Positions 32,770 through 32,823 of a stretch of 64,000 nt of DNA are shown here, in pieces; position 1 is the stretch's first letter, and each line of letters starts with the position of its first letter. The notes below the pieces were generated by a model. The model searched no databases. It had not been told where the DNA came from and saw only the letters and a list, made by a program, of their open reading frames with translations. The DNA lies in assembly GCF_000007005.1 (NCBI RefSeq), contig NC_002754.1. One strand, given 5' to 3'. Source of the DNA: Saccharolobus solfataricus P2 (lineage in GTDB: Archaea; Thermoproteota; Thermoprotei_A; Sulfolobales; Sulfolobaceae). Both the position numbers and the translations under genes were made by a program.

Positions 32770-32823
32770 CTTCAGATAGCGGAGATTCGTCATCTAATAG
32801 GAGCTTTTAACCTTCATCATTAG
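32770..32823 (-). ncRNA. Candidate box C/D sRNA upstream of cdvA
   Basis: C ATGATGA 32820-14, guide AGGTTAAAAGCT, D' CCTA 32801-798, C' ATGACGA 32793-87, guide ATCTCCGCTAT, D CTGA 32775-72; own TATA-like TTTTTAAG at 32853-46. Confidence 0.85.

Follow-up and report, generated by a model that had tools for sequence, protein, structure and literature searches.

A box C/D small RNA upstream of cdvA in Saccharolobus solfataricus as a probable guide for 2'-O-methylation of the wobble uridine of tRNA-Lys(UUU)

The 64,000 nucleotides of Saccharolobus solfataricus P2 analysed here (the window) contain, on the minus strand just ahead of cdvA, a complete gene for a box C/D small RNA (sRNA), and the question raised by this locus is which RNAs the two guides of so short a transcript would recognize. 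The most probable answer, to which we give a probability of roughly 0.7, is that the guide preceding the D' box directs 2'-O-methylation of U34, the wobble nucleotide of tRNA-Lys(UUU). The second guide, preceding the D box, is complementary to the intron end of the other lysine tRNA, tRNA-Lys(CUU), a match whose functional meaning is more doubtful.

The sRNA gene spans positions 32824-32770 (minus strand, ~55 nt) and reads, in this order, GCUA, the C box AUGAUGA (32820-32814), the 12-nt D' guide AGGUUAAAAGCU (32813-32802), the D' box CCUA (32801-32798), a UUAG linker (32797-32794), the C' box AUGACGA (32793-32787), the 11-nt D guide AUCUCCGCUAU (32786-32776), the D box CUGA (32775-32772) and an AG tail (32771-32770). 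Its 5' end would lie at about G32824, as deduced from the start GCUAAUGAUGA that RNA-seq has defined for the S. acidocaldarius sRNA Sac-sR26, and a TATA box of its own, TTTTTAA (32853-32847), stands at -29 to -23 from this presumed end. On the other side, the TATA box of cdvA (TTTATAA, 32759-32753) starts 12 nt past the D box, outside the sRNA, and sets a limit for the 3' end of the gene. Spacers of 12 nt (C to D') and 11 nt (C' to D), together with the overall length, fit the ~12-nt spacers and the 50-60 nt typical of the class, and the two imperfect boxes, C' one position off consensus and D' two positions off CUGA and devoid of its G, occupy the canonical places. A regular expression for the four boxes matched only twice in the window, at this locus and at the Rfam-confirmed sR2, the chance expectation being 0.003 matches per simulated window (300 first-order Markov simulations). 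Among the curated C/D families of Rfam, none gave an above-threshold match for this sRNA; the best was a sub-threshold, box-driven match to sR1 (24.4 bits vs a gathering score of 45), and no sR26 family seems to exist there. Membership of an Rfam family is not a defining feature of archaeal box C/D sRNAs.

The tRNA target was read directly from lysine tRNA genes of the host species and its relatives. In both S. solfataricus and S. islandicus, the tRNA-Lys(UUU) gene reaches the intron as ...GCGGGCUUUUA and resumes after it as ACCCGU, the full gene being composed of the 5' exon GGGCCCGTAGCTCAGCCAGGTAGAGCGGCGGGCTTTTA, the intron ACCGCAAAGGGTTGCGGAAAGCA and the 3' exon ACCCGTAGGTCCCGGGTTCGAATCCCGGCGGGCCCGC; S. 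acidocaldarius and S. javensis have identical exons with other introns. The anticodon arm reads GGGCUUUUAACCC in these four species and in S. tokodaii, for which the 5' part GGGCCCGUAGCUCAGCCAGGUAGAGCGGCGGGCUUUUAAC is also given by the probe used to isolate tRNA-Lys2 (PMC9095486, supplement). Against the host tRNA, the D' guide forms ten Watson-Crick pairs, from G31 to C40, flanked by a U12.G30 wobble at one end and an A1.C41 mismatch at the other, with a computed duplex energy of -14.8 kcal/mol. The fifth guide base upstream of D' (the N+5 base), A32806 or guide base 8, pairs with U34. A published criterion asks for at least nine contiguous Watson-Crick pairs covering N+5 (PMC6009581), and here the host-species tRNA offers ten, with N+5 on U34. 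The window itself contains no tRNA-Lys gene and no second copy of the complement of either guide.

As for how these genes were located, a metagenome scan with a pattern derived from the S. tokodaii sequence returned at least 120 loci; among the matches listed, L163 has flanking proteins that are unchanged in S. islandicus genomes, and the S. solfataricus copy was reached through a small protein encoded nearby. Six contigs with a tRNA-Lys(UUU) beside the genes for elongation factor 2 (EF-2) or RpoB (L175, L232, L162, L183, L217 and L236) were set aside, as their N-termini are unlike those of Sulfolobus EF-2 and RpoB. Searches with the S8e proteins of metagenome contigs recovered those contigs alone. 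Viral contigs scanned for the anticodon arm plus T-loop gave, among the matches listed, unrelated phage tRNAs, and a narrower pattern gave five matches, none of them from Sulfolobales.

The sRNA gene itself is not new, as it is the S. solfataricus ortholog of the published sR26 of S. acidocaldarius, GCTAATGATGAGGGTTAAAAGCGCTTATTGATGATGAACCTCTACCTACTGAAGAGCCTA, which was detected with 5170 RNA-seq reads and consists of GCUAAUGAUGA, GGGUUAAAAGCG and CUUA, followed further on by ACCUCUACCUA and CUGA (Dennis et al. 2015, BMC Genomics 16:632, PMC4644070, Additional file 1). The same record contains two more distant relatives: sR154 of Ignicoccus hospitalis, with the D' guide AGGTTAAAAGCG and 1360 reads, and sR106 of Thermoproteus tenax, whose D guide GCGGTTAAAAGCG contains GCGGUUAAAAGCG and again places N+5 on U34. 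For both guides of Sac sR26, Tte sR106 and Iho sR154, the table of rRNA targets of Dennis et al. gives "NP NP" (no prediction). Both the sRNA gene and its promoter are thus genuine, the transcript having been seen in relatives, and by analogy the gene is presumably expressed in S. solfataricus as well. This agrees with the original prediction, made from the window alone, of a stand-alone C/D sRNA with its own TATA box, ending just before the cdvA promoter and carrying the two guides as given above; the four-box architecture, the recurrence of the promoter and the orthology with Sac-sR26 all speak for it, although the orthology with the published sRNA is not recognised there. Its tRNA sequence, given as a consensus and said to be absent from the window, agrees with the S. 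solfataricus and S. islandicus genes, so that the proposed complementarity to the anticodon arm and the position of N+5 on U34 now stand on a real host-species tRNA.

A genome scan with a CdvA profile yielded 23 loci (19 from Sulfolobales, 3 from Desulfurococcales and 1 from Nitrososphaerales). The sRNA lies about 100 nt upstream of cdvA, on the same strand, in 19/19 of the Sulfolobales loci and likewise in Sulfurisphaera javensis, and 1-2 kb upstream in 3/3 of the Desulfurococcales loci; it was not found at the one Nitrososphaerales cdvA locus of the scan. Sac-sR26 was placed by its published coordinate, in a record without neighbouring genes. Across 25 orthologs, the C box is (A/G)UGAUGA in 25/25, the D box is the same in all, and the C' box reads GUGAUGA, GUGAAGA, GUGCUGA or AUGAUGA. 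Counterparts of the sRNA TATA box, CTTTTTAA(G/A) or TTTATTTA, occur at equal distance in most Sulfolobales orthologs, and those of the cdvA TATA box, CTTTTAAA or CTTATAAA, at the equal place. The D' guide follows the C box directly, with the group consensus RGGUUAAAAGCN, which the S. solfataricus sequence matches, its positions 2-11 being identical to those of Sac-sR26. At these ten positions (GGUUAAAAGC), the 25 orthologs agree save for a single A6-to-G substitution, which leaves a G.U pair possible, with A or G at position 1 and G, U or A at position 12. Mean pairwise identity amounts to 0.92 for the D' guide vs 0.37 for the D guide, of which there are 23 distinct sequences among the 25 orthologs. 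The D' box is found exactly 12 nt past the C box in every ortholog, as CUUA in most of them and as canonical CUGA in Ca. Acidianus copahuensis (L008), and this fixed distance, together with the one canonical box, sets N+5 at guide base 8.

Solved structures of archaeal C/D ribonucleoproteins (RNPs) reportedly show a guide-substrate duplex of 10 bp with the end bases unpaired, and conservation restricted to positions 2-11 of the D' guide is the pattern that such structures would predict. To judge from the alignments, the selective constraint within this guide is confined to the ten putative pairing bases in three orders of Thermoproteota. A co-variation of guide position 1 (A/G) with tRNA position 41 was considered and ruled out, as C41 is constant. 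The sole ortholog with an altered core, from the metagenome-assembled genome (MAG) of Sulfolobaceae archaeon ZMQL (L010, ~2878-2935), has the D' guide AGGUUGAAAGCG, which still makes a G.U pair with U36 of tRNA-Lys(UUU) but would be a perfect match for the loop CUUUCAA, that of tRNA-Glu(UUC).

A second question is when during tRNA maturation the guide could gain access to its target. The host tRNA-Lys(UUU) has a canonical intron after position 37 that starts with ACC, the bases found at A38-C39-C40 of the spliced tRNA, so that all ten pairs are also available in the unspliced precursor, with a computed energy of -15.2 kcal/mol. The original prediction had noted that the pairing crosses position 37/38 and that spliced tRNA would be needed if the gene had a canonical intron; the intron is indeed present, but splicing is not required for pairing. 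Such a start, ACC or else ACU with a G.U pair, occurs in 7/7 of the Sulfolobaceae tRNA-Lys(UUU) introns seen. It may reflect the outer helix of the splicing motif, and no selection for the guide is claimed. A37 is normally converted to N6-threonylcarbamoyladenosine (t6A), which cannot pair. Since A37 lies within the duplex, the small RNP would probably act early in tRNA maturation.

Several further observations concern the tRNA-Lys(UUU) genes themselves. Many of the archaeal tRNA-Lys(UUU) genes among the metagenome matches listed (L162, L175, L192, L205, L226, L232, L266 and others) are split in the variable-loop region by a non-canonical intron, after ...AACCCGUAG rather than at 37/38, which leaves the anticodon arm uninterrupted. 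In S. solfataricus (L286, CP050869.1), a gene for an SSV-type integrase (Pfam Phage_integr_3, 6073-6945) lies ~370 bp downstream of tRNA-Lys(UUU), and the short-read assemblies L287 and L288 break at this tRNA, which suggests that it serves as an integration site for a mobile element. In the S. acidocaldarius assembly GCA_001560515.1 (L276), the gene is duplicated in tandem (5391-5486 and 5503-5598), with an N separating the two, which probably stems from the assembly. S. acidocaldarius has both lysine tRNA genes, that for tRNA-Lys(CUU) (3755-3856, minus strand) and that for tRNA-Lys(UUU), next to those for S8e and SRP19 and no more than 2 kb apart; in Saccharolobus, tRNA-Lys(UUU) is found farther off, having moved by 12 genes in S. 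solfataricus and 18 in S. islandicus, as counted from protein accession numbers.

The most likely pathway would thus start with transcription of the sRNA from its own TATA promoter, ahead of that of cdvA, and its assembly, by analogy with the rest of the family, with L7Ae, Nop5 and fibrillarin. Positions 2-11 of the D' guide would then form the 10-bp duplex with G31-C40, on the intron-containing precursor and on the spliced tRNA alike, and U34, facing the fifth guide base from D', would be placed in the active site of fibrillarin and receive the 2'-O-methyl group, most likely before t6A37 is formed. C/D guides aimed at the wobble position are well documented, for U34 of tRNA-Gln and tRNA-Thr in Pyrobaculum and for the 2'-O-methylated U34 (Um34) of tRNA-Gln in S. 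acidocaldarius. In support of the pathway, ribose-methylated wobble uridines (Um, s2Um and mchm5Um) occur in tRNAs of S. acidocaldarius. On its sequence, the sRNA would be best filed as a well-supported member of this known class of wobble-position tRNA methylation guides.

In the case of the D guide, the original prediction left the target unassigned, and a candidate can now be offered. The S. solfataricus tRNA-Lys(CUU) gene, at the S8e-SRP19 locus, is composed of ...GGGCTCTTA, the intron ACCATGTAAGAAAAGCGGAGAT and ACCCG..., and D-guide bases 1-9 are perfectly complementary to the nine bases AGCGGAGAU that end its intron, 10/11 positions matching overall (shuffle p = 0.001; -15.8 kcal/mol). 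The N+5 base, G32780, pairs with the intron C at -7. In S. acidocaldarius, the D guide ACCUCUACCUA pairs with its own intron, which ends in ...GCAAGGUAGAGGAGAU, along a run of 9 within the segment AGGUAGAGG (p = 0.0008; -16.3 kcal/mol), the predicted site being the intron U at -10, and in S. javensis, the D guide ACCUCUACCUU makes 9 pairs plus a G.U with an intron ending in ...GAGGUAGAGGAGAU. The registers lie 4 nt apart, covering intron positions -1 to -9 in S. solfataricus vs -5 to -13 in the other two species, and at intron -7 a C-G pair in S. solfataricus corresponds to A-U in S. acidocaldarius and S. javensis. Pairing across species is weaker: -4.3 kcal/mol for the S. acidocaldarius guide on the S. 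solfataricus intron, and -12.2 kcal/mol for the reverse combination, with a mismatch at N+5. The intron segment paired with the guide overlaps the intron strand that, in the splicing motif, pairs with C32-U35 or with the 5' part of the intron. On the same precursor, the D' guide could also pair with the anticodon loop, leaving an A.C mismatch at C34 (-11.1 kcal/mol), and by our own bit-score count the D' and D guide interactions on pre-tRNA-Lys(CUU) would together be accepted under the relaxed double-guide rule of Lui et al.

These data allow two readings of the D guide. The first, which comes close to an even chance, is that it is an orphan drifting without a target, the match to the CUU intron being a coincidence or a relic. 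The diversity of D guides among the orthologs fits this, as do the guides of Ca. Aramenus and Ca. Acidianus copahuensis, which have no match to their own tRNA-Lys genes (runs of 5 at most); moreover, the intron matches came to light post hoc, methylation of the intron nucleotide opposite N+5 would have no obvious use, and guides of the S. acidocaldarius type also match the tRNA D-arm over 8-9 nt. Drift alone fits less well with 9-nt runs in three species through two different guide sequences and registers, with shuffle p values of ~0.001 each in S. solfataricus and S. acidocaldarius, with the replacement of A-U by C-G at intron -7, and with the drop from -15.8 and -16.3 kcal/mol in the cognate pairs to -4.3 kcal/mol when the S. 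acidocaldarius guide is set against the S. solfataricus intron. Judged from complementarity, a functional interaction between D guide and intron is conceivable, at somewhat worse than even odds. An extended scenario, in which sR26 would serve both lysine tRNAs, is likewise tentative: the D' guide would methylate U34 of the UUU tRNA, and the fast-evolving D guide would track the 3' end of the CUU intron through compensatory changes and register shifts, so that the RNP would work in trans on an intron, chaperoning or timing its splicing or else methylating one of its nucleotides. Since published target searches took mature tRNAs only, a target of this kind would have been missed.

The second guide of other family members also shows matches to lysine tRNAs. 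In the Desulfurococcales MAGs L022 and L024, the D guide contains CCAGGCU, as does the partner guide of T. tenax sR106, and this motif complements the D-loop (C)AGCCUGGU, which places N+5 at position 17; the D and D' positions of the Lys guide and the CCAGGCU guide are exchanged in T. tenax. A probable 2'-O-methyl at position 17 has been reported for S. acidocaldarius tRNAs (Wolff et al.). Across the family, the second guide thus tends, as far as complementarity can tell, to aim at another part of a lysine tRNA. The D-arm CAGGUAGAG was also considered as a common target of the D guide and discarded, as the match extends over 8-9 nt in S. acidocaldarius, S. javensis and Stygiolobus and over only 5 nt in S. 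solfataricus. In S. acidocaldarius, the tRNA-Lys(CUU) intron (L276, 3755-3856, minus strand) includes GCAAGGUAGAGGA, which matches the D-arm of the same tRNA, GCCAGGUAGAGCG, at 10/13 positions, both being complementary to the Sac-sR26 D guide.

Returning to the D' guide, several points weigh against methylation of U34. The main structural argument against an efficient reaction is the degenerate D' box, CCUA here and CUUA in most orthologs, which lacks the G of the sheared G.A pair and could weaken both L7Ae binding and the activity of the D' half. In the precursor, C32-U35 are expected to pair with AAAG of the intron in the bulge-helix-bulge and so to compete with the guide, and the window for the reaction may be narrow, as the duplex holds both A37 (t6A) and a U34 that is usually hypermodified. 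No published modification state of U34 was found for any Sulfolobales tRNA-Lys(UUU). In S. acidocaldarius, Wolff et al. (2020) reported Um34 in tRNA-Gln(UUG), s2Um34 in tRNA-Leu(UAG) and mchm5Um, but did not characterise the anticodon of tRNA-Lys(UUU), the Lys UUU fragments of their supplement coming from another species; the database-predicted sRNA targets that they quote are tRNA-Gly C50 and tRNA-Gln U34/G18 only. U34 of tRNA-Lys is not named as a C/D target in the literature searched, and may be so in Omer et al. 2000 or in the Lowe laboratory snoRNA database. Full-text searching with the 10-mers of guide and target found unrelated papers only.

These points could also be accommodated by an sRNA that binds the loop of tRNA-Lys(UUU) without methylating it, or methylates it only marginally, its catalytically weak D' half pairing with the precursor as a chaperone of folding or maturation. 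The D' box of nearly all orthologs, CCUA or CUUA, and the lack of any reported Um-type residue in Sulfolobales tRNA-Lys(UUU) in the literature searched agree with such a role, and conserved guide-target pairing without methylation is documented in Pyrobaculum (PMC6009581). Against it, on the other hand, speak the invariance of the N+5 base A8 and its Watson-Crick pairing with U34, the combination of the same guide with a canonical CUGA D' box in Ca. Acidianus copahuensis, and the canonical D box that adjoins the guide in T. tenax. All this makes binding without methylation unlikely. It also counts against this alternative that degenerate D' boxes are common in active Sulfolobus sRNAs.

Methylation of U34 also has to be weighed against a D' guide aimed at some other RNA containing GCUUUUAACC, be it an rRNA, an mRNA or a small RNA, so that the match to tRNA-Lys would be incidental. 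Ten-mers do arise by chance in a 3-Mb genome, but no rRNA target was predicted by Dennis et al. for the orthologs of three species, and the sole exact copy in the window is the antisense of the sRNA gene itself. Moreover, the ten conserved bases cover exactly the anticodon loop plus its two closing G-C pairs, a stretch that is itself invariant, and the guide has been kept from Sulfolobales to Thermoproteales, among which few other RNAs share 10-mers; a different target is therefore very improbable. Finally, the idea that there is no gene at all, only chance boxes in a cdvA upstream region conserved at the DNA level for its regulatory role, can appeal to the constant vicinity of the cdvA promoter in Sulfolobales but is effectively refuted, as the ortholog is abundantly expressed in S. 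acidocaldarius and I. hospitalis, lies 1-2 kb from cdvA in Desulfurococcales and gives way in T. tenax to the same guide within a different sRNA, conservation follows the boxes and one guide rather than a DNA motif, and a chance match is expected in so few simulated windows.

As for its surroundings, the sRNA gene is followed on its own strand by cdvA (31999-32712, minus strand; Pfam PF18822), and this in turn by cdvB (Snf7/CdvB_HTH) and a Vps4-like cdvC (MIT-AAA-Vps4_C). The window has a G+C content of 35%; a cluster named Saccharolobus shibatae shares 97% identity with its CdvA, and its CdvC equals PDB 4LGM, reportedly the Vps4 of S. solfataricus (Monroe et al. 2014), over 289 residues except for the engineered Walker-B E-to-Q change. 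The cdvA of the window is present in sequencing run SRR14067753, the number of which adjoins that of SRR14067752, a run with proteins named as S. solfataricus. The segment from the D box to the cdvA TATA box contains a motif, (A/G)GAGCC(N3-4)A(A/C)(C/T)C (32761-32771, minus strand), that is conserved in most Sulfolobaceae orthologs and could belong either to the sRNA, as its 3' tail or terminal stem, or to the cdvA promoter, as an element similar to a B-recognition element (BRE). Two copies of AGTATTAC(C/T) follow on the minus strand, one just past the cdvA TATA box (32745-32753) and the other abutting the ATG (32713-32721), and a leader TTTGAGGAGTA(A/T)TACC(N)ATG is conserved in most Sulfolobales cdvA loci; the repeats presumably resemble the published binding box of the cell-cycle repressor aCcr1. 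On the opposite side, a divergent gene (32890-33141, plus strand) encodes a predicted membrane protein of 83 residues with no Pfam match, kept in place (82-83 aa) in S. javensis and in identical Logan contigs. Elsewhere in the window, two further C/D sRNAs of Sulfolobus type score above the Rfam gathering thresholds, sR2 (11722-11775, plus strand, 59.6 bits) and sR11 (50127-50185, minus strand, 50.3 bits), and Rfam detects an intron-containing tRNA with the anticodon UGU (Thr; 45677-45766, minus strand) and a tRNA-Gln(CUG) (45937-46011, plus strand). ARAGORN reported the tRNA-Gln alone, missing or mis-calling intron-containing tRNAs, and searches were therefore based on Rfam and regular expressions.

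A last question to consider is what such a guide would mean for the cell. The wobble uridine of tRNA-Lys(UUU) is among the most sensitive nucleotides of translation, as it governs AAA/AAG decoding and frameshifting, and an added 2'-O-methyl would stiffen it in hyperthermophiles. The persistence of a ten-base antisense element from Sulfolobales through Desulfurococcales to Thermoproteales suggests that RNA-guided modification of the wobble nucleotide is ancient, and the proposed target would give a function to an expressed sRNA so far listed without any rRNA target. The fixed placement beside the cdvA promoter provides a landmark for annotation, although it may be mere conserved synteny. If the pairing with the CUU intron were real, no earlier trans-acting C/D guide would be known to target a tRNA intron, the methylation machinery would be linked to the removal of introns, and some of the many orphan guides, so called because scans have covered mature RNAs only, would find an explanation.

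The closest known system is Sac-sR26 itself, which shares with the S. solfataricus sRNA the architecture, the length, the 5' flank plus C box GCUAAUGAUGA, positions 2-11 of the D' guide, the 3' flank AGAGCC, the lack of a predicted rRNA target and the cdvA context common to the whole family. The two differ at guide position 1 (A here vs G in S. acidocaldarius, giving 10 vs 11 pairs) and position 12 (U vs G), in the D' box (CCUA vs CUUA) and C' box (AUGACGA vs AUGAUGA), and in the D guide, AUCUCCGCUAU vs ACCUCUACCUA, which are identical at 5/11 positions and have a register on the CUU intron shifted by 4 nt. More distantly, T. tenax sR106 and I. hospitalis sR154 are expressed sRNAs with the same GGUUAAAAGC element, N+5 on U34 and no rRNA target; in sR106, the element is the D guide instead of the D' guide, and the partner guide, with CCAGGCU, faces the D-loop AGCCUGG and not an intron, whereas the D guide of sR154, GGGGCCAAGCCC, lacks the CCAGGCU motif.

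Pyrobaculum sR27 (U34 of tRNA-Gln) and sR46 (U34 of tRNA-Thr), and the guide for U34/G18 of tRNA-Gln(UUG) in S. acidocaldarius, are likewise trans-acting, with one guide unique to a single anticodon loop and N+5 on the wobble U, and their other guide is either an orphan or aimed at a second site of the same tRNA. The present sRNA differs in its lysine target, as tRNA-Lys is not among the listed position-34 targets of Pyrobaculum or the predictions quoted for S. acidocaldarius. The intron of euryarchaeal pre-tRNA-Trp is said to encode a C/D guide for Cm34 and Um39, and so the wobble nucleotide is methylated there too on an intron-containing precursor, guide pairing and bulge-helix-bulge being mutually exclusive; there, however, the guide is the intron itself and both targets are exonic, whereas the present guide RNA has a gene of its own and is complementary, through its second guide, to the intron of tRNA-Lys(CUU). 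Finally, eukaryotic Trm7-Trm734 and bacterial TrmL achieve the same chemical outcome at position 34, but as protein-only enzymes that are not RNA-guided and choose their targets by an unrelated mechanism.

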